A stretch of DNA of 64,000 nucleotides from Adineta vaga. Taxonomy: Eukaryota; Animalia; Rotifera. Numbering within the stretch: position 1 is the first letter of the stretch; the number at the start of each line of letters is the position of its first letter. The stretch spans positions 11,904,001 through 11,968,000 of the forward strand of contig CP075497.1 of NCBI GenBank assembly GCA_021613535.1, in the 5' to 3' direction. A program made the translations under genes and the position numbers. The notes beneath the pieces are model-generated. The model saw nothing but the letters and a program-made list of their open reading frames with translations, was not told the origin of the DNA and did no database searches. Below, one piece after another: positions 13,237 to 39,343 of the stretch.

Positions 13237-14173
13237 TGTTGTATTTTGTCTGAAATATGTAGATAGAAAAAGAATGTGTAAACGAACAGATTCCTTTGCT
13301 ATTCTTTTTGCTTCTGTGTGTGTCTATATGTAACTTTCTCGTGTTATATTTTAGCTCAGAATGTATAATCACTTGTCATTGAAAGGCAACTCTCTCTTTT
13401 TTTTTCTTCTTACATCATAAGAGAGTGTAGACAGATGAGATGAAGCCGATGGAAAGTACTATATACTACAGTCAACCACTCGATTCTTCACACTTGTTCT
13501 ATTCTCTATTGACAATGATGAATGATGTCCATGAGCTTATGAATAAGTACGTCATTCAAATATAAAACAAGACATTGAACTTTCAATTTGACTTCTAGGC
13601 TATTATAGAAGAAAAGAAAAGAATGTTATTAACAAATGACCTTAAAAAGAGTTTATTTAAAAATATTTTTATTTATTCCGGTTTCTTCTTCTTCTAAAGT
13701 ATATACCTCTCATAGTTCATATCGACATCATTGAAATATTTCTTTTCTTTTTTTTTACAAATGAAGGACAAAGAAAAAAACACTCCCGACCTTGTACAAT
13801 AAAACACGAAATAGATCAGTTGAAAATGTTTAGTTCCTTAGCCAATGATTACGAACAATTCATTTGTCTTTTTTATGACTTCAAATGACATCTGTTGTAG
13901 AAATTCGTTAGCAAATCATTATTCAGCAATGAAATTTCGATATAAAATCTTCACATCTCCAGAAAATACCATTCTCTTCAAAAGTGATGATGATTCAACG
14001 AAAAAAAAAGGAATTGATGAAGATAAAAGTCGGACGAATGACTTTTCAAAGTCATAGAATTTCTTTTAATCATAAAAAACGAATGTCACATAGAAGATTT
14101 TTATAACAATTAACTTCTTCTTTCTTTCCTATGAACAATAAGTGAATCTTTTTCTTCTAGATCACCGATTGTT

Positions 14174-15989
14174 ATGAGTAGGAGAAATAAAACGAAGAGA
14201 AACTTTTCTATTTAATTTCATTTATTCAGGTACAATAAGTAAAACGCTGCCATTAACTAAATCAATTGTTGATTATACATTATACAAATATTCGGACATA
14301 CAAAATTCATGGATTATTTGTGAAGGACATTTAAATTATCGTTTTGATCAAATAAAATTACTTAATATTTCACAATGTAAAACAAATCTTTTTGTTAGGG
14401 CGATTTATTTATTGTTCTTTTTAATTTAGTTGCGATATTTTTTGTTGTTTTAGCAAAAATTCCGATTGAAAATGCTAAACCAATCAAGGCGATTTATTTG
14501 TATAGAAATCAAAAACATCAACCATCGAATTTCTTTCAATTGAGCGCATATGAAAGGTAATGAGAGAAGTTAAATTGAATTCGATTGTTAGGATTATCAA
14601 ATAGAATATCTGATCAATGTTCGAAGAATATCAAGTCGAAATATTTTCTCTTTCAATTAATTGGAAAAGATTCGAATGATCAAGAAATATTTGGTGCGAA
14701 TGATGTTAATGAACGTGATGTATGTGAAGAAGAAGAATATTCGTTTCGATGGTTTTTGTTTTCTTGATTTAGAAATGGATGAGACATATAAATCAAGCAT
14801 TGAATTGGACAAAGCAAAGTTTAGCACCAAATAAGTGAGTGATTAAATGAATGAAGTAAAACGAAAGTTTTATTATTGTCAATCAGTTCAACGATAGCTC
14901 ATTCAGAGTTAAGATGCAATAAGAAAGGAAATTTACAAACATCTGGTATTTTCAAAGATAAAATCTATGATTGTTATTCTTGCTGCTTTTGTTTTCAAGA
15001 AAAAAAACGAATATTTATTAATTTGAATGTTTCTATACGATTTTAGAACATATTGATGCTGATGTTCATTCACATTACGAACCATTTCAAAAGTAAGTTG
15101 AATATTCTCTGTCATCACTCTCTATCCATTTTAATTCAGTTCAAATCAATCGACGAATAACAATGAATTTCATTCATCTGACGATACATCTCCTCTGGAT
15201 TTAGATCGTTATTTGAGTCCAAATCATCCTTCTATGTTACCTCGTCGACCTGTACCTCCAATTCCTGATGAAACAAATCATTTATCTGCTTGTCCACCAA
15301 CAGAAAATATTTATCTCACGGCAGAAGAAATTCCACCACCAAATTTACAAGTACAAAACAGTACTTCGACTTTAATTGAAGATCAAGTAAATCAATACTA
15401 AACTTTTGTCCGGAAGAAAACATCGAATTTTGTTTAGATATTTGCATGGGATAATATTTACTATCTAAATGAACTCGATGATCATACACGGTAACTATTT
15501 TGTTTTCGAATAAATAGAAAGATTTATTTCTTTTCGAATTGTAATAGTATTCTCAATGATATTGCGGAAATCGGTGCATTTCTTATTCGACCTCAATTGA
15601 AAAAGAATAAATCCAATGATCATGAATATGTAATTCATAAAGGAAAAAATTCTCACAAAAAAAAACACAACTGAATATTTATCTTTAGACATTGAGTATT
15701 TACGCATTCGGTGGAATTATTAAATATAAAATTTTAACGCCAATGGTAAAATTTATTACGAAATAAAAAATTCGATTTTGTTATTTGAAATATTTAGAAT
15801 GGAAATTTTGCATTGACACTTGATCCCAATGAAGCAAGTTTTGATACAATCTCTGATCTTTGTCAGTATTATACAAATCATCCATTACCAAGTTCACACT
15901 CACGCGATGATTCAATAAAAAAACCTGTGGGAAATCTTTGTCTTAAATGGCCTTATAAATATTATTTGTATTGTACAAATCGATTTTAA
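14174..15989 (+). CDS. PH - Pro-rich - SH2 adaptor (SH3BP2-like architecture), paralog A
   Basis: PH C-terminus FLFQLIGKDSNDQEIFGANDVNERD|KWMRHINQAL; LPRRPVPPIP and ENIYL; SH2 IGAFLIRPQ...TLSIYAFGGIIKYKI...FDTISDLCQYYTNHPLP...LKWPY. Confidence 0.75.
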
Positions 15990-16236
15990 ATTCTTGAGAA
16001 GAAGAAAAACGAATATTTACAATAGTTTTATTCATAATTTACTTGATTGAAGATTAAAATAAAAACAAACATTGCATGAAGTTTATATTGACTTTTTTTT
16101 ATTCTAGATTATTGAATTGATTAAGAATTCATATAAGATCATTGACGACGATATAGTCTGTCTGTAAGGAAGAGATCGAAATTTGTTGGTAGTGAGTTCG
16201 AGAAAATTGATTTGATGTTTTATCATTCTAGATCAA

Positions 16237-17891
16237 ATGGGAACATTGAAAGGACTTTTGAATAAAATAGCTGGAGGATCAAAATCTTTGCATGAATATG
16301 AAACATATAAATACGAAGAGATTGATTCGAAATGGATTATTTATGAAGATCAATTACAATATTTATATAATAAAACTCCTCTTGGTGATTCTCTTTGTAT
16401 GTTGAATAGAACAATTTGTTCTTTTCGAAAATTGTATTCATGAATTTTAGTTAAATCATGTTCGGTTGTATGCGCTCGAGTTCCCATTAAAAATGTTGAT
16501 GATACCATTGGATTATATTTGTTTATTGATGAGAAAAAAACCCCTATGACTTTCTTTCCAATCAATGAAAAAATGAAGTAGAGATATTCGAAAAAGGAAA
16601 CTATTTTATTAAACTAATAAACATATTTTTTGTTTTAGAATTAGTGAACAATGTAATCGAAAGATAACACCAATTCCTAAATGTTTTCTATTCGAATTAC
16701 AATTGGTCGATCGTAATGAACCTGTGATATTCGGTGCAAAAGATCATCATACACGAAAGGTAAAAGAAAATATGAAATTTGAATTTTGTTTTCTAAATAA
16801 ATCTTTCTTTTAGATTTGGATAAATCATTTGAAAAATGTTTTTTCACAATCAAAATTAATCAAGCAAGATTCCGAGCCTTCATAGTATGTTTTCAGAATT
16901 TTGTTTTCAGAATTTTTTCCATTGGATTATTTTATCAGTTTATCGCCAACACCTTCGATAGAATCCGATGTTAAACCATCGGCTCCTTTTCAGCAGGGTA
17001 TTGACAAAAAAAACGCTTTCTTTTCTCGCTCGATTCGATTATCAAATTTTATTCGAATTATTCATTCAATTATTTCTCTTGCTTTTTTAGACGCTTGGTA
17101 TCGACCATTTGAACGTAGTAAGTTTTCTTTTGATTTTTACTGTTAAACTAAAAACAGACCTCGATTTATTATTTAGATTAGTAAGTGAAAGAATTTCGAA
17201 GGAAATTTATCGAAAATATATGAGTTTAGTTTACAACTGCAAAGTGAGGGAAATGTGATGCGAAATTCGACAATTGAATCGAGTTCAGTTGAGCAGAATG
17301 AACAAGAAAATACTTCAATTTTACAAGAGAATGTAAAACATCATGAAGATTATTTGTATATTCGATCGATTTTTATGTTTTAGATTATTTTATGGAATGA
17401 TATTTTCTATATGAATGATAAAGATGATTATAGAAGGTAAATAATCTAAATTTCAAATAAGATTTGATCTTTTTTCATTATTTAATTAGTGTTTTAATAA
17501 GAACGGGTGAATCCGGTGCTTTTCTTATTCGTCCACAATCAAAAAAGACAAGTTCAAATGATCATGATTATGTAAGTAGTGAATACGAACATATTTTCAA
17601 GCAGAAAAGAACATATTTTTCTAGACGTTGTGCTTATATCATAAAACGCTTGGCATTCGTTGTTTTGGAATCTTTGAATCACAAACCCGAGTAAATCATC
17701 TATTGAAATATATTTCATTGATTGATAGACACTATGTCTTTTGTTCTAGGGAATTGAATATAGTTTAGTAAAAAGGTCAAGAAACTTTTGTTGATATGAT
17801 TCAACTTTGTCAATATTACATAACAAATCCATTACCAATGACGACACAAAATATTTTTCTGACAAAACCTTATAAAACAATTTTAAATTGA
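16237..17891 (+). CDS. PH-SH2 adaptor paralog B (apparent +1 frameshift in A-run near 17770)
   Basis: Same exon architecture as paralog A: FLFELQLVDRNEPVIFGAKDHHTRK|IWINHL; GESGAFLIRPQ; FVDMIQLCQYYITNPLP...LTKPY. The last exon needs one A removed from GTAAAAAGGT to stay in frame. Confidence 0.7.
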
Positions 17892-21930: not shown

Positions 21931-22968
21931 CTAGTTTCTCATTATCGCTGTATTCCACGGTATAACTTGATTATGATATAAATGTAATCGTCTTCGTATG
22001 TGTTTCCAAATTTTTTTCATTAGAACAAGTTTTACTTGGCGACGATATCGTGCACAAAACATTAAATAAATATAAAAACTTATCTAAATTGAAAACAAAA
22101 CTTATAAAAATGATATGTAGATGATCTTTAGAAAACTTATTTACCGAAGAATTAATGACTGCTAAGGACATACAGATAGTTTCTACAATGGACAATAAAG
22201 ACTCATCTTCTGCATTTATTTCCGAATTGAGCGAATAACATTTGTAAATAACATATGGTAAAGATAAAATAACGAAAAAAATAATTCTTATCCAAACCAT
22301 AGTTGTTAATTGTTTATCAAGTCGACGACGAGCTATCTGCGCTCGTTGTCGAATTATATGACATACATTTCGATAAGCTAAATAACTAAACAGAGATGAA
22401 ATACAAATTGGACAGACACCAAACAATAACGGTATATGAATATATGTAAAATAAAATGAAAATTTTCGATTTTGAATTGTACATTCCATTGTTGAAGAAA
22501 TATCGAAAAAATATATAACTGGAATAGCATTAATAATTGCCAAACAAATCGATACGAATGTTAACGTTCGTGATAATTTTAATGTACTTTTTTGTCTTAA
22601 ATAATAAAGAAAATTTGTTGATAAAAATTGATCTAATGCAGCAAAACATATCATTAACATGGAGATTAAAGCAAAGGAATGTGTAACACTGTTTGTATTT
22701 TACACCAAACAGCTGAACTATTATTTAGAGTTATAGAACATTTCATAAGTAAAATAAATGATGTATGTGCAAGTAAATTTCGACCAATGTTAATAAAAGA
22801 TTCAATTAACAAATAAAATATACATGGATTATGATGAAATATACGAAGATTAAGAAAGATAATAATATTTAATAGATTTCCAATCAAACCAAAGATGGAA
22901 ATAGATGCATCGATATAAATATTCAGATGTACTAGAGAATCATTATGTTTCTCCGTTGTTGGTAACAT
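21931..22968 (-). pseudogene. Rhodopsin-like (class A) orphan GPCR with a 1-nt frameshift near 22683
   Basis: TM1 GLIGNLLNIIIF, NPCIFYL, WCK, ICFAALDQF (DRY-like), LDKQLTTMV, LSLPY; exon 2 (22083-21931) SFYIYLMFCARYRRQV. ORFs 22666..22968 and 21971..22660 are one gene offset by 1 nt. Confidence 0.75.
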
Positions 22969-23304
22969 CTTACTGTAAAGTGTGAAGAAAATTAGTAGGT
23001 CTTCAAAGGAGTATTTTTTTAAGTGGAAAAGTAACTGTTTGAGACTATAAAGAGAAAACTATAGTTTTAGTTCATGCTTTGATAAAGAACGACAGAAAAT
23101 AGAATTGAAATATATACTTCTAGATCTCAATCGATTTCGATAGAAATTTATACGATAATGATAAATTGAAAAAATCGACAAGATGTCACTATATTCTCAT
23201 GATAACTGTTTTAAATAACAAATCATTCGTTGAACATAAAGAACCACACATATACGTCTTAGCAACACACACAAAAAAGTATAAAATTAAATTCATTTAC
23301 AAGA

Positions 23305-24407
23305 ATGTCATCATTAACATCTTTAAGTCCATTTGAATGGTTTGAAATACATAGCAATTCTCGTTCACCTCAGTTACGGGTTGGTCATTCAAGTACATTT
23401 ATTCCTTCATCTTCAACGGTCTATCTTCTTGGTGGTGCAAATCCATCGGAATGTTTTGCAGATATTCATTCACTTTCATTACCATCAAAAACATCAGACA
23501 CATTTCTTTGGACGAAATTAATCGGCGAAGATCCGGCACTCCGACGTTATGAACATTCTACTATTTTTTCCTCTGAAAATAATGATCAGATTGTGTTCTT
23601 TGGTGGTGCAGATACAGAAAATAATCATAATGATATTCATGTATTTAATATTTCAACCAAAACAATCGAAAATTGGACACCGAAAGATAACAAATTAGTT
23701 TCACCTCGAACTCATCATTCAAGTTGTTGTGTTCAAAATGGTTTATATATATTCAGTGGTGGTTTTCAAGGTGTCAAAGCAGTTGATGATGCGGAATTAT
23801 ATCGATTTGATTTAGGTAGAGATTTTTTGAATATAAAAAATACAAAAAAACAAATATTGAATAAAATTCTATCTTTTTTATAGTTTCACGGACATGGTCA
23901 TGTGTACCAGCACATGGTTCACCACCTGAACAACGTCATGGTCATTGTTTATTATCACTTGGAAATTCTCGTCTTTATCTTCATGGTGGAATGGATGGAC
24001 GAACATTCTTTTCATCACTTTATTCAATAGATATGAATGAAAAACCACCACGATGGAATGAACATCGCTCATCATCTTCTTCTCCAATGGCTCGAGCAGC
24101 ACATGGTGGTGTTGCTATTGAAAAGACATCAACATTATTTATATTCGGTGGATTATCACGAAGTGGTCAAGCATTAAATGATACTTGGTCATGGTCAGCT
24201 AAGAATGAACAATGGACAGAAATTATTTGTCGATCAGTACCGAGAGCAAGATTAGATTTTGCTTATTGTCTTGTTGAATGTAAAGATATTGAACAAGATT
24301 CAGAAAAAACTATACCATTCATGTTTATTCATGGTGGAACTGATACACAAGGCGAAGTTTTTGATGATTGTTTTTTATTACGATTAACATTTGATAATGA
24401 TCAATAA
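23305..24407 (+). CDS. RABEPK: Rab9 effector protein with kelch motifs, 2 exons
   Basis: Kelch repeats RVGHS..GGANP, RYEHS, PRTHHS..FSGG, RHGH..HGGMDG, RAAH, RLDFA..IHGGTDTQGEVFDD; intron ~23816-23883. Confidence 0.88.
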
Positions 24408-26812: not shown

Positions 26813-29800
26813 ATGTGTGCATGTTATGTACTCCAAGCATCATCATCTATTCGAAGTACTTATCGTTTTGTAAGTATCTTTTTATTAATTCTTTCGAGTT
26901 TTACACAAAAATTTCATTCTCTAATTCTGTTCATTGAAGAATCAACTCCAATAAGAACCTTTTTTTGTCATTCTCTTCATTAAATGCTTTATTAATATTA
27001 AATCTTTTTTTGCCTGAGTATATGAAAAGAAACTCATTCAACCATGTTTACAAATAAAAAGTAAAACGATGCATTGTCATCATCATCATCTGTATTCCAA
27101 TCGATAAAAGACTTATCATTTTCAAGTAGCTATTTGAATAGATCTTTAGTAAATAAAATCGATTCGTTTGTTAGAAAATAAAACGAACAGATTGAATCAA
27201 TTAATTGTAATTTATACTGAAAAATCATATTGAAGTATTTCCTGTTATGGAATACTCGAACGAGAAAATACCGAAACAAATTCAAGAAGAAAAAGAAGTC
27301 TCGTTTTTGTTATGGATCACAAAGAAACTCATTTATTTAATGCTTGTTTGTGAACAAATGAAAAATGCATAGAATATTGCGAGATGAATTTCGCCTGATT
27401 ATTTCATTTCGGTTCATTATTAAAAAATTGATCTAATTGAAAACGGAATGTAAAATATTGGGAAAGAAATTAGATAAAAGACACGCAGTTGTGCGTGTGT
27501 CTTTATTCGAATAGTTTCTTGGATTGTTCGATCGATAAACATCTATGTGAAGAAGATAGACACACACACACACGTCTCAATGTATCTATGCATACATTAA
27601 TAGACAAAGAAAAAACGGTTATGATCATTCCATTCCGGACGCTTCACGTTCGCCTAGAGAAACCTTTCCTATTGGTGTTAGTGCTTTATATATATATATA
27701 GTTGTTTCCTAGAGAAGAAGAAACTTTTCTTCTCTATATCTGTCTGTAAAGGAATGTCGACGTAATTATTTTTCTTGACTTCATCTATTTTCTATCTCTC
27801 TCTCTCTTTGTCTATCTCTCATACTCCTATCTATCTCTTTATTTCCCTGTTTTTTATGTAGAAATAGTCACTATTGTTAAAAAACCCTACTTGCCGATGT
27901 TAACGAATGCGATGACGCGAGAATATATAACGCTCATGTTCATGACATAACTCATCGAAGCATTTGACACGAGCGCAGGTGTGTTGCTTATATGTTTGAT
28001 AAGCATGCATCATCTAAAAAACTAGTCCTTTAGTAACAACAATTAATTAGTTTCTTCAACACCTCAATCTTCTTGTTATTATTTCAATAAATATTTATTT
28101 CAATATGGAAAAAACGCCTTCATCATCACCTTTATCATCATCAAATACAAAACGTTCATTTCAACGTAAAAAACTGCAATATCAAGAACGTATCACTGAT
28201 CAACCACCATCCTCATCTTTTCCAACAATAACGACCCTAATGCCTACTTATCTAACAGCAGAGAATATTCGAAAAGTACCCTTAAACAATATACCATCAA
28301 ATTTTAAAGATAAACAGGTAGAAAAATAGTTGAACAACTCGATATAGTATTTTTCTATAGTCTCTTTTCTTTTCTTTCTTCTGACTTTTATCAAGAAGAC
28401 ATATTATTTAAACAACTATTCTTTAATTTAAAGAATATAAAAATAGAAGAGAAAGAAGAAAAAAAAGTAATTATTTCAAGTGAATTCTTTAAGAAAGTAA
28501 ATTCGTACTAATCTACATTAACTGGAAGCTTTTCTTTCTCTAATTGACATAAGAGATTTTTCATCTTTTAAAAAAAAGAAAAGAAGAATATTTGAATTTC
28601 TTCATAAACATTAATAGTATTACTTTCCCCTACGACTTTTTTGTTTACAAAAATAGTCAAAAAAATGAACTTCATCTAGTTTTTTTTCTCTTCTTTATCC
28701 AAAAGGTTATCTCAGCTCGAAAGTATGGTATAGTAATATATATAGGAAAAAAATCCGAATGCGAACGAGAGAGAGAGAGATGGAAACAAATTGATTTTAG
28801 TCCACACGATTATTGTACTGTAGAGTAATGCCAATCAAGCAAATGTCATCTTGGGAATTTGCTTTCGTTCTTTGATGATAACAAAAGGCTAGTAAGCGAA
28901 CTAAAAGAAGGAGAGAAAGCAAGTTTCCGGTGGTTTTTTTTTGTTGGCTTTAGTTCTATAGTGAACAATGAGATGAAGAAAGAAAAACAATGAGACGAAT
29001 GAGAAATGGGATAACAACAACAGAACAAATCAGAAGGTTGGGTGTTTTTTAATGATCTCTACTCGTGTGAATAATTATCGTTTTCTGATTTATTGAATAA
29101 ACAGCATTAGATCTTCGTCATTCGATTAATTGAATAAAGATATTGATATATGGTTTTGTTGTTTTAGGAAATGGAATTAAAAGCAGTTGGTAAATTGGGT
29201 ATGGTCAAAAGAAAACAATTTCTTCAAAAACGTGACATTAGTCGATCACATGAGGTAAAAGAAAACTGCAATATTTTTTTTATTATTTATTTGCAATATT
29301 TCCTATCAAATAGAAAGAGAAAAAGAAAAAGAAAAAGAAAACTGTATATTTGATTTGAACGTTTTTCCTCTCTACTCGCAACTCTGTTACTTAAGTTTCT
29401 CTATTGATGATCATGATATAATGATTTTCATCGTTGATCAAATATTTAACTAAGAAAAAGAAAAATTTCTCTTCTTCTTCGTTTTATTCTTCTAACATTT
29501 AACTATGTATCAGTAAGCTTTTAGTCGAAGAAGAAGAAGAAGAAGAAAAAAAAAGGGAAAGATGTGATGCTCATTAATTATGTATGAATTAACAAACGAT
29601 TTTCTTCAGGTATGTGTAGAAAAACAAAACAAACTTAACGAATAGAAACGATTTATCTCGTGTTGTTTTCTTTTTGTGTTCAATACTTTAGAGAATAAAA
29701 ACTCTTCTTTCTTAGATAATAACTTGATTAGTTATTTAATAAAAACTTGTTAGAATAATATTTAATCAAATTCAATAGTATTTCCTGATGATAATCTATT

Positions 29801-32800
29801 GTGATGTGTTTTTATTAATATCAAGTGAAAAATAAAGAGATTTTAAATCGAATGAATAAGGTTTTTTATTGTCTTAGAAAGTAAATTTCATTTCTTGTGT
29901 TATTTTAATCAAACTATTTCTCATTAGAATAACATAAATAGAATCTCTCCTTTTTTTATAATACATACACATATGTGTGTGTGTCGATGAAAGAGTATTT
30001 GTAAACAGATAGAAAGTGTCGGATAATCTATGTTTCATGCCGTTGTTTTTTGTCCATATTGTTCTCCAAGCGGAAGGAGGCGAACAACAATATTCTAATG
30101 TTACTCGTTATATTCCAGCATGTAATTCCTCTGTGTAGAATATCTAAGGAAAAAGTAATCGATTTGTCGGAAGAAGAAGAAAAAAACTGAAGGTCTTTGA
30201 CAATGATCATCACGAAATAATAGTACTTTGAATGACGATAAAACTAATCATATTTTGATAAGACGAAAAAATAGGAAGAGAGAGAGACATGAAGATTTCC
30301 CATTTGTGTATACTTCAATTGCGGAGAAAGATAAGATGCATACTAGTGATTATTCACTGATTGATAAATGATGAGCAGATGACTGTTAGATTATTACTTA
30401 ATGAAGAAAATTTAGTGAAATTATTTCTATAAATTGTTCTTTAGTTTGTTTGCCTTTTGTTTTGTTAAGACATGAACGGCAAAGAAAATATTGCCGAAAT
30501 CTCGTTAATTAAACTAGTAACGATCTAATTCAAGTTGGCATTCAATTGGGAATTATATTTTTGTTTCATCGTTCTTTTTTTCTTTCTCCGAAAACTATTA
30601 ACGAAAAAATGATTGAGATAATGACAATGATGAGAACATGAACAAACGACGATCGTTTCTTGTTGAACGAGAAAAACGAGAAGAAGAGAAACATCCGTGT
30701 TGATAGAATCGTTGGTTTATGCATGGAAAATCGTAGTCTAGAATGCAAACGATGCTCGACACCGGAGGAAGAGAAAGCATATCCTTCCATCATCATCAAT
30801 GATTATTGTATTCGTTTCAATAACGAATTGACAGGCGCAGAAAGTCTTCATTTCTCGCTTTTCTTCTCGCTCTCTCTTTCTCTGATCTTTTTCCGTCGAG
30901 AAACGCACGGACCATTATGTTTTTTCTTCAAAGCAACAATACAAAATAAAATTCCTTCTATCATTCTTATTCTCTTATATGAAAGAACTATCACTTTCCT
31001 TCTCTACTTTTTCTCTCATACGTCTGTCAATCTATCTATCTATAAAATGATGGGTAGTTACCAACAATAATGATATCAATTTATTAAAAAAACGTTCTTC
31101 AATTTGAACATTTAAGCTTTTTTTCCATTTGAATTCCTTTTTCTACGTCTCTTATCAATCTCATCATGTCTTCATTTCGTCTTGATACTGCATTTAATTC
31201 ATTGGCAATCACCTCCACATCATCAATATCTACGACAACAACAACAACAACAAACGCGCCTATTTCTGCTAATCGTTATTTATTAGATGCTGATCCTCGA
31301 CGTTTATCTATCGTCAATACACCAAATACGAATCTATCTGGTGGAAATATTCCTCAACGCCGTACATCTATTGTTAATCATAATCATCAACGTCGAAATT
31401 CTCAATTGCGTAAATCAAGTTTTACTACTTCAACATTGGTATGTGTGACAAAATCTAATTAGTCTGTCTCTTCGTCAATGACATATATAGAAACGGCAAA
31501 AGAAAGAAATCTTGGATATCTTTTCTGCCTAAGAGATATACGTTTGTATGTTTTTTTAAGCAGATGCATAATAATGATGACATCAAATAGAGAAAAGGAT
31601 TTGATATACTTTGGGCAAGTAAAATTTTCCGATGAGAAAAATAATCTTGAAAGAAAATATTCGTTTATATATTTAGTAATCATGTCAATACGATGATTGC
31701 GCAGGAATTTTCTATTTGGAAAGTGATAAATATACATCTAAAGAGATCAATAACACTTCATTATTAGATTTCGTCGTATTTTGTATACTTAAATAATAGA
31801 ATCGTTTCCTTCAATCGATAACAGATGTTGAATGTGTTAAGATCAACTTAGTTGCCGAAGAATCTTTCTCATCTAACGAAGCAAAACATTCGGAAATTAT
31901 ACTAAATGACAAATGCGAGAGTGTAGAAAGAAATATGAGAAATAAACTAAGCAATGGTACTAATAACAGTTAGCCAACATAGATGATGAATCGTTTATTC
32001 CGGTTAATCGCTTTAAGGAAAAAGAACAGAATTAGAAGTCAACGATCGCTATCATCAAATATATCTCGAGAAATCAAAATAATCAGGAGAAACAATTAAT
32101 TTTAATCATTGAATTGTTATCTGTTCAATCACTTATATGATTATCAGAGCAGAAAAGTGCGACAGTTTGTTCCTAGAGAATTTTCTCTCCGATATATTTG
32201 ATTAGTGAGGAAAAGAAAACAGCAATAAGTAAAAGTAATTCTTTTCCGCTGTTAAAACTCTTCATATTTTTATCTTACGGAACAGTTGCCTTTATAAATA
32301 TTTAAGTATGTCATGTTTATAAAACTCTCGTCAACATCATTAAAATACTCATTTATTGATAAAGAACTTGAAGGAAAGAAGATTAATCCATAAATAATGT
32401 TGTCGATGATTAATCGCTTGAAAAAAAAACAAACAACAACGATTCTTATCACTAAACTAGTCGAAGATCGTTTCTTTTCATTGGCAACTTGAAACGAAAT
32501 TTAATAATAAACTTGTTAATTTATTGTCACTTTTTATTGAAGATTTCTTTGAAGAATATTTAATCAAACTAATTCAATTAATTCTAATTGAATTTTGAAA
32601 AAGAAAACCTAACAACGCAAATCATTTCTATCAAGAGAAAAAGAAGAGTTTTCATCAGGAAAGATTTCAAAAACTAGATAAATAGAATTCATTATCGCTC
32701 TAATAGGTAATCCATATTTTTGTTTGGAAAGAATGGTGAATTCGCTCTTTGTTCTCTCCTTCTTCTTTTTTTCCTTAAAAATAGAAAAACGGAAGAAGAA

Positions 32801-35800
32801 GAAGAAAGCCTCTTTTTCTCTTACTTAGAGGTAGTCAATACAAAAAGCCCATATTTATTGATAAGAAAAACATTTTTCTTATTTTTTTGAACTACTTTTT
32901 TTTTACGTTATTAAACTTGAAAGTAAAGAGAGACAGAAATATATCTTTCAAAGAAGATCATTTCTTGTTGACGAGAAAAAGAAATATGATTATGGATTTA
33001 TGAATATTAAATGTCTGAGCATTATCATCAGATTGTTCAATATGTAAGTAAAACATCTTAATCCGTTTTGTTTTCACTTCTTCATTTTTCCAAAGAGAAT
33101 CTCGAATTTCATTTGAAGAAGAAAAAAGGATTTGTTCTCATTATTCTATCTGATCGAATGTGCGCGCGCGCAAGAAACGAATATTGTTTAATGATGAGAA
33201 GAAAGATTTTCTTCATCGATATTTTCTATAGCATGCGTTAGTAATCCGTTTCATGTCTAAAAAAGAAGAAGAAAACGTCTGTCAATCTTCGTTGTTGTCG
33301 CGATGAAATGTGATGATTTGACTATCTGTATCTGTTGTCCGGCCTTTTCTCTCTCTTTCTTTCTTCTTTTTTTTCTAATATGATTTGAATTAATAAGAGA
33401 CTCGTTCACTCTTTTCCGCACAACGTCTGCAACTATCTTAACCGATGTTTCCTCGTTTGTCATCATTTGACATCGGCAATAAACAAAATGTTATTCCAAA
33501 ATCTATGCTCATATATATATATATATATATATGCTTTGACATTCTATGAACATTAACAAAAAATCTCAACTAGAAATCCATGTTTCGACGATTGAGATTA
33601 AATGATCAACATCTTTCCTAACATGTCTATTTCAACAATTAAAAATTTGGGAGAATTTATGGCAGATTGTGCACGGACAACACATCGTCTTTCTTGTTAT
33701 ACACCATTACCAAGTCATGCAACTCAGGTTTGATATCTATCATATTTATTTAATGATGAAGAATTTCGCACATTGAAGGATAAATATGGAATTTTCTTTG
33801 GATTGATCGAAATAAGAAGAATATCTTACAAATGTGAAAATCATATTTTCTCGATGTTTTTCTCCTAATAAGATATTTTGCTTGAATAGCTCTCTTTACT
33901 TCTTTCTTAACAACGATGAATGATTGAAATGTCGTCGTCCTTATCGCTCTTCTTCTTCTTTCTTCTTCTTCTTTTTTTTTACAGTTGAATAAAAACAAAC
34001 AGGAGAAGATAATTCATGATCTTATTAGACAATCGTGACCAGATTTTTTTCTTATTTGTATGATCTAGTAAATAAATCGAGAGAGAAAAAGCAAAAAATA
34101 AGATCCTTAGTATCGTTACTCTTCTCAGAAATGAAATCCAATGGTACTCATCCGATTAGAAGTATGCGTAAGATATATAAATGTTATTAAGAAGATTTGT
34201 ATGTTTGATAAATAATTAAAATGATAACTTCTAGGATTACAACGATTTCAACGAGCTCAGGTATTGATTGTTATTGCTTTTTTCTTCTTCTAAGGAAAAT
34301 CAAATGAAATGAAGCAAAAACAGAAAAAGAAACGGAATTATTTCCGCTCAAGTTTTCTCTCAATTTTTAAATGAGTTTTTCCACTTGTACTTCTTTTTGC
34401 TTCTAAAGCTCAGATAATCAAGGCAATAGAACTGAATAGTTTCGGTGTTTTTTTCTTCTTTTCTTGTTAGTTTGCATGCATGCATATTCAACATCGCATC
34501 ATTTAAAATCGATCACTTCCGAAACAGTACACATGATATAGTAATTCTTCTAGAAATTTGTTCATGTCGATAGATCCTAAATCTTTTCTATTTATGTATA
34601 CATTATTCTACTTGTTATTTTTCTTTTTCGAGGAAAACGAGAATAAATAAATCAATTTCTTTCTTTTAAATAAGAAGAAATTCTCTTGGTATTCAATGAT
34701 ATCTCTCTCGATGCATGTTGGAACATCTAATCGATGTGATCACTAGAGAAAATATTTCAATGAAGTATTGTGTTGTTTTTGCTACTTTCTTTCTTTCTTT
34801 CTTTCTTTTCCTTGAATCCCTATTGTCAATCGAGGAGACTCAATTATTGATTCCATGCGCGCTATCATGCGTCCGTCCTGGCCTTGAATCCATTTATATG
34901 GACTCGTGAAGAGACTTGCGCACACAAACGCAATGGAAAATATTTGTAGCGTACGAATAATACAAGACGAGAACGTATAGAAAGAAGGAAGAAGGGACTC
35001 ATCGTCTTGCCATCGCGTGCCACTGAGCTTTTAAGGATTATAAGAGCAAGGAACTCAGTTAGTCAACAACACATAGTAGCGAATCGAAGACAGAATTACT
35101 TTCTTTCTTCTTCTTCTTTTTTCTTCCTTATTTTTTTTTGCTTCACACTCACACACATCTATATATATATATATGTATGTATTCACAAACAACAATCAAT
35201 CACTATTACTACGACAACAATAATAAAAAAGAACAACGTTGATGATTAGAAAACTTTTTCGAAGATCTTCTTGTTTTCGATGTTTATAAAACAATCATGC
35301 GTAGTCATAGTACGAGTGAAAGTAGAGGAGAACATCATTATCATCAAAATCAACGTCGTTTATTTCTTCGAAATCTTCTTACTGACTTTCGTCGTCAATC
35401 AAGTGTTAATGATTATAAATTTCCAAATACATTGGTATGTTGAAAAGATTCTCCGTAACAGATTAAGATAATACTTTCGACGTGTATTATTTCACTTGGC
35501 CTACATGCAAAGATTTCTTTAGAGATATAAAATATTCTCTAATGTAATAATAATAGAGATTTCGAGAAGAAAATCTCAAAACTTCCTCTGATTAAATCTA
35601 TCTTAAAGTCCCTCTTGAGATCTATCTTTTGTTTTCTTTTCAAGAGATATCAAACAGTTTAAAGAAAATATGTTAGATGAACAAATCCCCAGATATTTGA
35701 GCGAGAAGTTTTTCAACGATAATCATCGTTAATGATCAACTAGAACTTTTCCTTTTATTATTTCATTGAAAAAAGAACATTTAACATCACTGTTGTGATC

Positions 35801-38534
35801 TTTTTCTATTCTTTTCTTTTTTTTTCTTCTATTCATTATGGCATCAGCTGTCTTTGTCTCTCTTCTATTTCGATGTTATTTGACAAAAACGAGACGGAAT
35901 AAATGAAAAGAATAGGCATGCAAAGCAATGATGATCATCGTAATAGTTCTGGCATCCGACTTTCAAATTGTTTCTTTCTGGTTTTTCTTCGACATGCAAT
36001 GTATTATTCTTCTCTTAAATAGACTATCATATCAATAAACGTATGAAGAGAGAAGAACATAGTGTCGATCTCTTGAGAATTTCTTCTTGTTGAAATCTCG
36101 AGGTTACAATTCGAAGGTTAAGAAAGAGATAAGCTTTGAATGTATGAAAAGATCAAAAGAGTAATATAATGATGATGGAATTAAGTGTTGTGATCTGATG
36201 TATAGCTATCTTCTTATGATTGAAAAAACATTTCTCTTTATCAACAAAATGAAAAAAAAAACACATGATGATAGAATCTTTGTTGTGCATGTTTGAATAA
36301 TTCAAACCAATTTCTCTCTTTCTCGTTCTCATTGTGTATGCATGTAGAAAAGGTAATGAAATTGTGTTTCTATCATGAGACTTATCAGAACAAACAAAAG
36401 GTTAGAATCCATTCTTTTTCTCACACCTTTTTTTTTCCTATCTTATCGAAATTTTATCTAAGAGTACAGAGTATCATTATATAACATCAAAACTTTGTAC
36501 TTACAGCCATATCTGGAGTAAAATATGTTTTAAAATCTAATAGATCATAAATAATCGCACTGGTTATTCCATATAAAACATTAGCGCCAACACGCCAACA
36601 GTAACATCGACATTATTCAAATTAAACGGCATTCGTACTCCTTGATGAGCGACTTTTCTCACTTCGGTTATATTTTGTGCCCAAGTTGTAACAATAATTG
36701 CTTGAGGATTATCACGAACAAAATCTCTTAACCAAAAATATGTTCTCGGATCGATAGTATTCTGATCTAATGATTGACTTGATGGTCGATAAGCATATTC
36801 TAATGTTAAATCAATTAATTTCTTCATATTTGAATTTGTTTGACTCCATCGAGAATACAGTGAAGGATATTTATCTTGTAAAAGTTTTAATTGTACACCT
36901 AAACCGATATTTAAATAAGTATCATCAAAATCAGGAGGTATTTCGAAAACATCTTTGAATGATGCACTTCCTGTACGAATTTTATCAATTAATTCAGCGA
37001 TATTTTTTATTCCGAGAACTTTTAAAATATCTTCAATAATTAGAAGATTTCTATCCAGATCCATAATTAGATAACGTAGATTATCAGGTGTGGATTCCCA
37101 TGTATTCGTTGTTTCATTATATGTTTGTGGCCAAAATGTCATCAATGGAACAGATGATTCATTTTGATTATGATCATGAAATTTTTCAATCGCATCAATT
37201 GATAAAGATAAATGTTCAGTATCGATTGTTTGAGGAGCACGACCATACATATTTGCTTCTAATAAAACGGTTGATATCCAACTAGAACAAGAAAACGTAT
37301 TATTATTTCGTAATAGAAAATAAACTTACCCAGTAGCGAACATATTGTTATCGAAAACATAGATAAATTTGTTTTTACGTAGATCAGCTTCGTAAGGTTT
37401 ACCGAAAAAATCGATTCGGATTTCCGAACGATAGAGGCCTAATTGTTTTTCCCAAATCGGAAAATTAAACTTAACAGGTTTTAATATCTAAAACAAAAGA
37501 AACTCCTCCAATGTATATCAATCTACATAAAAAAGCTTCTTTACTTGTTCTTCACTAATTGATTTAATTAATTTTTCCATAACTTGTTCGATTGGTGGAG
37601 TTGCATTTGTATAGTAAACATTGAAACAAATCAACAAAAACAAAAGCTTATGTAATAACATCATAAGAATAACAGCAGTGAAATCTTTATTATTTTCTCG
37701 TTTTATATTCATTTTTTTTGTTATCTTTTTCGCTATGATTATCATCATGTGTAAACTTTGAGTCATTATTTATATCGACATATAATATATGTTCTGTTTC
37801 TTTTAGCAACCAATCGATATTCAAGATACTCTATTAACATTATCTGGAAAAGAAATTCGTGTGGAAATGAGAATTTTAATTCGAATTGATTTTCCAATCA
37901 AAATTTTATGTGTACGTTGTAATCCAAAACGGACACTTTTACAAGTTTTACAACCGATTGTTGACAAATTGAAATTATCGATTGGACAATTTGTTTTTTA
38001 TGTGGTATGAAGAGAGGGAGAAGAAAAACATATTTCGTTCTTTTCTTTTGCTTAGAATGATTCGTTGATACCACTTAATCTCAATGATACAGTTAGTATT
38101 TATGATAATCAACGGATATTTACATTAACAAAGACTGCGTCAGGTGTAGGTTAGTATCGAATCAGAAAAAATTTTCAATGATTTGTTCTTTGTTTTTTTT
38201 TGAAAGATATGTCAAGTAGACAAAGATTTCGACCAACGAATGATATTTTTGAAATGATATCGGAAAATGATGAAGATATTAAATTTGATGAATGTGGAAT
38301 TTTAAAACCAGTCACTGCAACAAAATCAACGATTGTTGTTGTAAGTCAAATAAGATTCTCGATATTCTTTAAATTCATTTTGTTTTATAGTCAAATGATG
38401 ATTATCCTCATTCACCTACACCAGAAAGTACACCAATTAGCGATAGTGATAGTAAGAATGATGAACGTGGTTTTTTGAAATAAAAACTTGTCTTTTCTTT
38501 TTTTTTAGAAATTTACTGCGGTCCCAAACGGTGA
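26813..38534 (+). CDS. RGS12/RGS14/loco-like gene lacking the RGS domain: many alternative phase-0 first exons plus constant exons (end of RBD1, RBD2, degenerate GoLoco)
   Basis: Constant exons start at 37807: QPIDIQDTLLTLSGKEIRVEMRILIRIDFPIKILCVRCNPKRTLLQVLQPIVDKLKL...|NDSLIPLNLNDTVSIYDNQRI, matching the tandem-RBD junction of RGS12. DIFEMISENDEDIKFDECGIL resembles GoLoco. Candidate ATG...GT exons at 26813, 28105, 29171, 29580, 31166, 33011, 33623, 34131 and 35297. Confidence 0.6.
33511..33532. repeat. (AT)11 microsatellite
   Basis: Directly visible, ~90 nt upstream of candidate first exon 33623. Confidence 0.9.
36505..37664 (-). pseudogene. Nested antisense gene for an uncharacterised secreted protein; frameshifted and apparently 3'-truncated
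   Basis: Signal peptide MMLLHKLLFLLICFNVYYTNA; exons give ...VFDNNMFATG|WISTVLLEA...IPPDFDDTYLNIGLG...IDPRTYFW...MPFNLNNVDVTVG. An 8-bp duplication shifts the frame before ANVLYGITSA. The donor at 36504 has no recognisable downstream exon. Confidence 0.7.
36585..36600. repeat. Perfect 8-bp tandem duplication CGCCAACA x2 (possible transposon excision footprint)
   Basis: ttagCGCCAACACGCCAACAgtaac; removing one copy restores the reading frame of the nested gene. Confidence 0.8.
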
Positions 38535-39224
38535 TTAATCTTGTTGTTTTAATATTCGTGATGATTGAATTGAACACTACCCCGGTGTAAAATATTTCAT
38601 GAAAGAAATACTCGATGAAACAACAAAATTTATCAAATCGAAGAAGTGTTTTGGTTCCCTTCTTTCTCTCCTATCTTATCCTACACAATCAATGGTGCTA
38701 TCTCGTATATCCTTGGTGGTGTATCATTGTCTTTGAATGTATGTTCATACCATCAAAGAATTTCCTATTCTTCTATCACTACTACTGTGTTCTCTTTCTT
38801 TCTTTCTTGTCGTATCCATTTCTGTGGTACCAATTTTCTTTTCTTCGTGTTTAATACCTGTATGTCAAGATTTTTCCAGATTTGACATTGTGTCAGTGAG
38901 TGTGTACGTGTGACAATAATGAAACAGTACGAAACTAAATCAGAAAGCAATATATACATATATATATTTATGAAGAAAATGAGAAGATTTTCATTTGAAT
39001 ACAATTATTTCATTCCATATATTTTGTTTTACTTAGATAATGATCATATGCATTCGAGAAAAGTAGATAAAAGAAGGTTCGTGATAGAACAAGGATTAAT
39101 ATTGCTAATGAACTATGACGTCTAATAATCAGCGTATCTTTCAACGAGATAATTTCGTTATCAATGAGCATTAATTCAATGATAATTATGATAATTTAGG
39201 AGGAAATGCGATAGTTATTCTTTC

Positions 39225-39343
39225 GCTTACGGCCATACCACGTTGAATACACCAGTTCTCGTCCGATCACTGAAGTTAAGCAACGTCGGGCTCGGTTAGT
39301 ACTTGGATGGGTGACCGCCTGGGAATACCGAGTGTCGTAAGCT
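39225..39343 (+). rRNA. 5S: 5S rRNA gene (single copy in window)
   Basis: GCTTACGGCCATACCACGTTGAATACACCAGTTCTCGTCCGATCACTGAAGTTAAGCAACGTCGGGCTCGGTTAGTACTTGGATGGGTGACCGCCTGGGAATACCGAGTGTCGTAAGC is a canonical metazoan 5S with terminal stem and Box A/C. Confidence 0.97.

Follow-up and report, generated by a model that had tools for sequence, protein, structure and literature searches.

A conserved array of short 5' exons probably feeds a loco/RGS12-type gene that is incomplete in the Adineta vaga assembly

Introduction

Mammalian RGS12, which occurs in multiple N- and C-terminal isoforms, and RGS14 carry an RGS domain that is followed by tandem Raf-like Ras-binding domains (RBDs) and by the position of a C-terminal G-alpha-binding motif. 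The same order is found in a gene of the bdelloid rotifer Adineta vaga located in the stretch analyzed here, a window of 64,000 nucleotides of assembly GCA_021613535.1 (contig CP075497.1, positions 11,904,001 to 11,968,000 of the forward strand; coordinates without a prefix refer to this window). The window carries one of two ohnologous copies of this bdelloid loco/RGS12-type gene. While the GoLoco motif (PF02188) is annotated in RGS12 proteins, it was undetected in the bdelloid homologs, and the putative second RBD of the rotifer gene (RBD2) lies below Pfam detection.

A design with alternative 5' exons is known already from Drosophila loco, in which alternative 5' exons and three common 3' exons give rise to five transcripts, c1-c5 (PMC2324087). 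As in loco, the domain order of the rotifer gene is RGS, RBD, RBD and GoLoco position, and its alternative 5' exons would lead to isoforms that differ at the N-terminus. In contrast to loco, the rotifer has more 5' exons (seven to nine), all of them very short at 10-91 codons, a PDZ-bearing 5' exon was not found in the window copy, the GoLoco motif is degenerate and the RBD1 intron of Adineta harbors a nested antisense gene. Several first exons with their own start codon and donor in front of shared constant exons are also a feature of the clustered protocadherins and of UGT1A. There, however, the variable exons encode large paralogous domains, whereas those of the rotifer encode short peptides without demonstrable paralogy, and stochastic promoter choice is not shown for the rotifer.

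Here, we describe an array of 5' exons that, in our judgment, is likely to feed a common exon beginning with SLAVTDEE, which opens the RGS domain of this loco/RGS12-type gene and which is missing from the assembled copy.

Results

Between positions 26813 and 35434, the window contains ten segments, forming nine modules, each of which starts with an ATG, remains open and ends at a GT donor in phase 0. These coordinates, starts and donors had been proposed in a sequence-only reading of the DNA and were confirmed for all ten segments. By itself this pattern is not beyond chance, as 85 ATG-to-GT phase-0 segments of at least 10 codons were counted on the forward strand between 26400 and 35600; conservation is what sets the noted modules apart. 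Four comparison loci were used, namely the ohnolog on contig C3 and the loci of Rotaria sp. Silwood2 (L016), Adineta steineri (L020) and Adineta ricciae (L024), and a segment was regarded as conserved if the ATG, the GT donor and the open frame were retained in at least two of the four. Only 13 candidates passed, all of which lie within the modules at 26813, 28105, 29171, 29580, 31166, 33623 and 35297. The modules are thus singled out because they are conserved in related loci and not because of the ATG-to-GT pattern.

In alignments to the related loci, the similarity of the conserved modules starts at or near the ATG and ends a few bases past the phase-0 GT donor. Seven modules are hence conserved as ATG-to-GT units, corresponding to several 5' exons with their own ATG and donor and without an acceptor, the sole 5' exon with a conserved AG acceptor being that at 29168. 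Upstream of 31166 and 33623 an in-frame stop (for 33623 a TAA at 33599-33601) is found with no AG before the ATG, and the open frame ahead of 31166 (31133-31165) also has no AG; because of this, neither module can be an internal coding exon in that frame. The conservation expected for the nine modules in related rotifers was obtained for the seven above, while 33011 was retained in A. ricciae only and 34131+34235 was unconserved. Judged by sequence conservation, eight of the nine modules picked earlier stand, and the array (seven or eight modules) is conserved across Adineta and Rotaria as well as between both ohnologs. A Pfam search with single modules matched no family.

Noncoding blocks upstream of 5' exons (27928-27982, 28825-28859, 30788-30959 and 35012-35160) are also conserved with the ohnolog and Rotaria. 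One block is 87.5% identical to Rotaria over 55 nt and another, 35 nt long and identical in C3, has a CCAAT sequence (held by 28825-28859). These blocks may be promoter elements.

Deposited gene models of bdelloid relatives begin differently, yet all continue into one shared phase-0 exon, SLAVTDEE..., with which the RGS domain opens. Type D (module 35297) is found in models P0002, P0017, P0018 and P0021, type B (31166) in P0020 and P0022, types A1 and A2 in series (28105 and 29168) in P0019, type C followed by D (33623 and 35297) in P0023 and the 33011 type in P0030. A proximal type of 19 residues (E), encoded at C3:4573144-4573200, is used by P0024 and has no module in the window. In Rotaria socialis, P0021 (type D) and P0022 (type B) are identical over 578 residues and differ in the first exon alone. 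The BRAKER models of A. ricciae, R. socialis, R. sordida and R. magnacalcarata were built with RNA-seq hints of the same species, those of A. steineri and of the two Silwood Rotaria with RNA-seq of a related species (PMC7943196). Five N-terminal types are joined to SLAVTDEE in such RNA-hinted models of other species, which are predictions; as predicted structures, the relatives' models show that each donor would fit a single common phase-0 acceptor.

A variable-first-exon architecture with a constant part had been proposed for this locus. In the relatives' models, ATG-bearing 5' exons with conserved phase-0 donors do feed a common part; the common acceptor, however, is that of SLAVTDEE and not 37807, which the sequence-only reading had assigned to this role. 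Likewise, the modules had been taken as alternatives and not as serial exons, which is borne out for B and D in R. socialis, whereas 28105 stands in series with 29168 in P0019, the sole model that uses 28105. P0042 was considered as an RGS-less isoform and rejected, since the last part of the RGS region is present upstream on its Logan contig (L025), read through into a retained intron.

All modules lie on the forward strand. The most distal one (26813..26869) comprises 19 codons (MCACYVLQASSSIRSTYRF) and a phase-0 GTAAGTA donor; ATG, identical length, open frame and donor are retained in C3, L016, L020 and L024, with conservation beginning at the ATG and ceasing after the donor. No gene model in the relatives uses this exon, and the RNA examined, i.e. 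assembled contigs of four runs that are spliced and hence derive from RNA, covered 32600-38599 only. First coding exon A1 (28105..28317, 71 codons) ends at a conserved CAG/GTAGAAA donor (slashes mark exon ends). Its donor and frame are retained in all four loci and its ATG in two, the frames of Rotaria and C3 having an ATG a few codons further upstream. In P0019 (Rotaria sp. Silwood1), the N-terminus is homologous to A1, which this model splices to an exon of the 29168 type. This exon, A2 (29168..29254), has the acceptor TTTTAG/GAA ATG and may be used as second exon of the A isoform or from its own start at 29171; it shares 84-85% DNA identity with C3, L016 and L020, and in five of five loci the AG acceptor lies 3 nt ahead of the ATG. 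Across A2, the P0019 protein reads ...KKGQ/EMELKNIGKVGMVKRKQFLQKRDISRSHE/SLAVTDEE.

The 10-codon exon at 29580..29609 (MYELTNDFLQ), which has a phase-0 donor and is used by no gene model, retains ATG, frame and donor in A. ricciae, C3 and Rotaria but not in A. steineri, and is the weakest of the conserved set. First coding exon B (31166..31438, 91 codons) carries the conserved sequence ...HQRRTSIVN..QRRNSQLRKxSFTTSTL/gtatgt. It starts P0020 (R. sordida) and P0022 (R. socialis), where it is joined straight to SLAVTDEE. In a word search, exon B was present in 48 protein clusters, drawn from genomes of bdelloids and from metagenome contigs without a label; these were considered as fragments of spliced transcripts and rejected as such, as 48 of 48 are unspliced read-through open reading frames (ORFs) of genomic contigs.

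The 11-codon first coding exon at 33011..33043 (MSEHYHQIVQY) was not found in the C3, Rotaria or A. steineri loci; the A. ricciae model P0030 begins with its counterpart, MSEHCQQIFQY/SLAVTDEE. First coding exon C (33623..33727, 35 codons), the N-terminus of P0023 (A. steineri), is conserved from the exact ATG to just past the CAG/GTT donor. The two-piece module 34131-34161+34235-34260 (34131..34260) is not supported: its ATG, frame and donors are retained in none of the four loci, and just the second donor aligns, in two of them. First coding exon D (35297..35434, 46 codons, ending ...FRRQSSVNDYKFPNTL/gtatgt) is kept in all four loci and is joined to SLAVTDEE in the four models of its type. 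One low-depth, unspliced RNA contig is colinear with 35209-35393, beginning 88 nt or more upstream of the ATG of exon D, which fits an exon D with its own 5' untranslated region (UTR); no RNA contig was found over 33011, 33623 or 34131 in the four runs. A loose contig end at 35353 and a deep 18-nt match at 35859-35876 were set aside as short matches of unrelated contigs.

Exons B and D share an R-R-x-S-x-V-N motif (31350-31420 and 35385-35410), and B contains a second RRNS. Paralogy of the two exons was not supported, since hhalign of their profiles gave a probability of 1% (E 0.053) over the 12-column RRxSxVN motif only. From its sequence, the shared motif is a possible basophilic-kinase site and perhaps what the N-terminal tags contribute.

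The 3' constant exons (37807-38004, 38056-38149, 38207-38340, 38391-38451 and 38509-38534, forward strand) encode the end of RBD1, the putative RBD2, the GoLoco-position motif and the C-terminus. Introns 38005-38055, 38150-38206, 38341-38390 and 38452-38508 were each supported by GT..AG joints in contigs from three of the RNA runs, in agreement with the cassette introns predicted earlier. The reading frame of the joined 3' exons, which ends at a stop codon at 38532-38534, was checked locally; the window exons were joined solely for this purpose, and all searches were carried out exon by exon or with homolog proteins instead of a joined spliced model. The exons in 37807-38534 are 62-82% identical to bdelloid RGS/RBD proteins.

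A protein search with exon 37807-38004 led to P0002, a Rotaria protein of 597 residues with an RGS domain (119 bits) and an RBD (30 bits); P0002 and P0023 together range from 113-119 bits for RGS and 30-32 bits for RBD. A word search with P0002 revealed a family in Rotaria, Adineta and Didymodactylos, with remoter matches named RGS12 or loco in molluscs and vertebrates. In the tandem-RBD region, the window RBD exon matches the RBD1-end/RBD2-start region of the invertebrate homolog P0009 (E 8.9e-5), and positions 64-141 of a profile that includes non-rotifer sequences match the RGS14 RBD structure 1WFY (E 2.5e-11), with Raf RBDs at about 1e-4. At the GoLoco position, where P0009 scores 26.5 bits, the rotifer protein reads NDIFEMISENDEDIKFDECGILK (also given as ...EMISENDEDIKFDECGILK), without the Q-R of the D/E-Q-R triad, and the motif appears degenerate in sequence. 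A Pfam RBD (PF02196) scan of the whole genome was too weak to find the locus. The window gave no hit to the RGS domain (PF00615), and an RGS exon specific to this copy was not found anywhere in the assembly. The gene belongs to the R12 subfamily (RGS12/RGS14/Loco), and its assembled copy is incomplete.

This incompleteness is apparent at exon 37807 itself. Its acceptor is real, used in RNA and in phase 0, as had been proposed; it is, however, not the first constant exon, as it starts inside RBD1. The first 20 residues of this exon make up the C-terminal part of an RBD (positions 51-69 of the 69 in the Pfam profile, with an E of 0.016 that is below the cut-off), so that an upstream RBD exon is required, and in P0002 and P0023 the full RBD1 (PF02196) spans the exon junction. 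RNA contigs of two runs (X1 and X2) that reach 37807 extend upstream by 28 nt absent from the window and from the whole assembly. Together with two bases overlapping the acceptor, these encode ELYHTSSNDQ, the end of the N-terminal RBD1 exon, for which the A. ricciae ortholog has ELYLTSSNDQ (89% DNA identity, L024 16306-16333) and C3 has ELYSADQ. A spliced leader was rejected as the origin of the 28 nt, since they code for the terminal part of the RBD1 exon and have their match in that of A. ricciae. The loose contig ends, whose orientation was checked against C3, were searched as 28/30-mers and 20/21-mers in the window and the whole assembly without a match. No RNA joint from 33043, 33727, 34161, 34260 or 35434 to 37807 was present in the four runs.

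Between 28.8 and 38.5 kb, the window runs colinear with the C3 ohnolog, which contains, between its homologs of 35434 and 37807, an RGS domain (C3:4573424-4573823; PF00615, 58 and 46 bits for its two exons), a Ser/Thr-rich linker and the N-terminal part of RBD1. The A. ricciae ortholog L024 aligns nearly continuously with the window (68-88% identity per segment, and 74-78% in most) apart from a single interruption: window 34415-36196 corresponds to L024 11119-12916 and window 36435-38991 to L024 17384-19915, so that the junction of a gap of about 4.3 kb lies at 36196..36435. The unmatched stretch L024 12916-17384 (about 4.5 kb) holds the SLAVTDEE/RGS exons (13771-14714), the linker (15720-16097) and the N-terminal RBD1 exon (16144-16333), as well as the final exon of an antisense gene (16371-17213). 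No other copy of the missing RGS and N-terminal RBD1 exons was found in the assembly (100.8 Mb, six contigs). Both missing pieces for which RNA was seen, the end of the N-terminal RBD1 exon and the 3' exon of the antisense gene, are contained in RNA of this species, and the loco-type and antisense genes are both truncated because of the single gap.

The antisense gene lies within the intron dividing RBD1, and its 5' two-thirds (36505..37712, reverse strand) are spliced and expressed, with RNA contigs of 1.9 kb in X1, X2 and X6, CT..AC introns at 37282-37329 and 37488-37544 and a GTAAG donor at 36505. Beyond 36505, the mRNA continues with 893 nt that the assembly lacks, the first 27 of which match L024 17184-17210. 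In A. ricciae, a minus-strand gene of 630 residues is found at the matching place, filling the RBD1 intron. Two differences between assembly and RNA were noted: an 8-nt tandem duplication at 36585-36600 (CGCCAACA twice), which shifts the antisense frame in the assembly and is present as a single copy in RNA contigs of three runs, and a G at 37921 in all RNA contigs in place of the assembled A. The antisense gene begins some 95 nt away from the 37807 acceptor, and its protein has a signal-peptide-like N-terminus. Searches of Pfam, NCBIfam and PDB gave no relative, and no paralog was found; the leads from a protein atlas were weak and terpene-cyclase-like (score 0.85). The C3 ohnolog lacks the gene, and at the corresponding place in Rotaria no similarity was detected.

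The window has about 30% G+C and introns of about 50 nt. The region is flanked by a G3BP-like gene (19.5-21.2 kb) and an ERF4/GOLGA7-like gene (24.5-25.2 kb), both on the forward strand. Between them, at 21974-24404, a 7-transmembrane-receptor-like frame on the reverse strand and a Kelch-repeat-like frame on the forward strand were recognized by eye from the translations; neither has a counterpart in the ohnologous C3 block. Directly downstream of the loco-type gene lies a 5S rRNA gene (39225-39343, forward strand, Rfam 115.8 bits), of which the C3 ohnolog has a copy in the equivalent relative position (C3:4577659-4577827). At C3:4561327-4563887 (L011) and in L016 and L020 (1-3540), the loco-type gene is closely preceded by a second gene with a PDZ-named N-terminus and its own RGS; this second gene is missing from the window and from L024. 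In the R. sordida model P0031, a PDZ-named N-terminus is joined to the linker/RBD exons and both RGS domains are skipped.

Discussion

Taken together, the conserved phase-0 donors, the common exon in the relatives' models and the gap at the matching place of the window argue for a loco/RGS12-type gene in which an array of alternative 5' exons feeds the SLAVTDEE/RGS exon, and we regard this, with that exon missing from the assembled copy, as the probable structure of the locus. Each 5' exon would have its own promoter, and promoter choice would provide the same RGS-RBD-RBD scaffold with different N-terminal tags of 10-91 residues, 28105 probably being spliced to 29168 ahead of the common exon. 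In the relatives, the common exon opens the RGS domain and is followed by a linker, RBD1, RBD2 and the degenerate GoLoco-position motif. The missing 4.3 kb or so should hold the RGS, linker and N-terminal RBD1 exons together with the antisense 3' exon.

Several observations weigh against this structure. In this species, none of the 5' exons was seen joined to the common exon in RNA, which covered the range given above, and the common exon is not in the assembly; the RNA runs consist of assembled contigs, which drop rare isoforms. The only evidence for expression of a module is the one low-depth contig at 35209-35393. The relatives' gene models are predictions and not isoform counts, and P0023 places C and D in series. 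RBD2 was not detected by Pfam in the window exons or in the bdelloid homologs examined, and GoLoco (PF02188) had no Pfam match in exon 38209-38340 nor in P0002, P0023 or P0030. The modules of 10, 11 and 19 codons could also be 5'-UTR exons or upstream ORFs instead of coding starts.

Alternatively, the conserved modules might be small independent ORF genes, upstream ORFs in 5'-UTR exons or serial exons of one long 5' region. Gene callers make separate small genes of the 28105-, 29171- and 31166-type ORFs in L015-L020 and L024, models P0019, P0023 and P0101 connect some modules serially, and junction RNA was not seen in this species. Against this, conservation ends a few bases past the phase-0 GT in every case, in-frame stops without an AG lie upstream of 31166 and 33623, and five N-termini are joined to one acceptor in RNA-hinted models, so that we consider these readings unlikely.

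The gap, for its part, could be a real hemizygous deletion, with the deleted allele also expressed and giving in-frame RGS-less products beside those of the intact allele. The 8-nt duplication at 36585-36600, missing from all RNA contigs, would fit a decaying allele, and the G at 37921 in all RNA contigs, in place of the assembled A, also speaks for this reading. However, neither a joint from 35434 to 37807 nor an A at 37921 occurs in any RNA contig, assembly error accounts for the gap equally well, and an X2 contig without other-letter differences from the assembly over 36505-37655 nevertheless runs into the missing exon. We therefore hold an expressed deleted allele to be quite improbable. 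Still a little less credible is its fuller form, in which an asexual diploid is hemizygous for the deletion and transcribes the deleted allele from the same promoters, yielding tagged proteins without the RGS domain and most of RBD1; such proteins would be in frame because all 5' donors and the 37807 acceptor are in phase 0. If true, a naturally domain-deleted, possibly dominant-interfering RGS scaffold of the R12 type would exist beside the intact allele.

The original proposal that each module is spliced directly to 37807, with RGS-less RBD2/GoLoco adaptors as normal products, is very hard to maintain and largely refuted: although all donors and the 37807 acceptor are in phase 0 and the assembled sequence between them has no RGS exon, no such joint was found in the four runs, X1 and X2 contigs join 37807 instead to the end of an N-terminal RBD1 exon that the assembly lacks, exon 37807 begins inside RBD1 and, at the matching interval, the orthologs carry RGS, linker and RBD1. 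A family of RGS-less Ras-effector adaptors, as proposed, is thus not supported, as the RGS exons sit in the 4.3 kb gap relative to A. ricciae, and the RGS-less reading arises from a deleted haplotype or an assembly gap.

For the alternative-5'-exon structure favored here, the locus has consequences on two levels. A chromosome-level assembly lacks 4.3 kb holding essential exons of two expressed genes, and annotation relying solely on the assembly would create a spurious truncated, RGS-less gene. A defined set of eight or nine N-terminal tags is now available for tests of localization or regulation. The loco/RGS12 design, in which many alternative 5' exons serve one signaling scaffold, is old and strongly conserved, being kept in both ohnologs and at least in Adineta and Rotaria.

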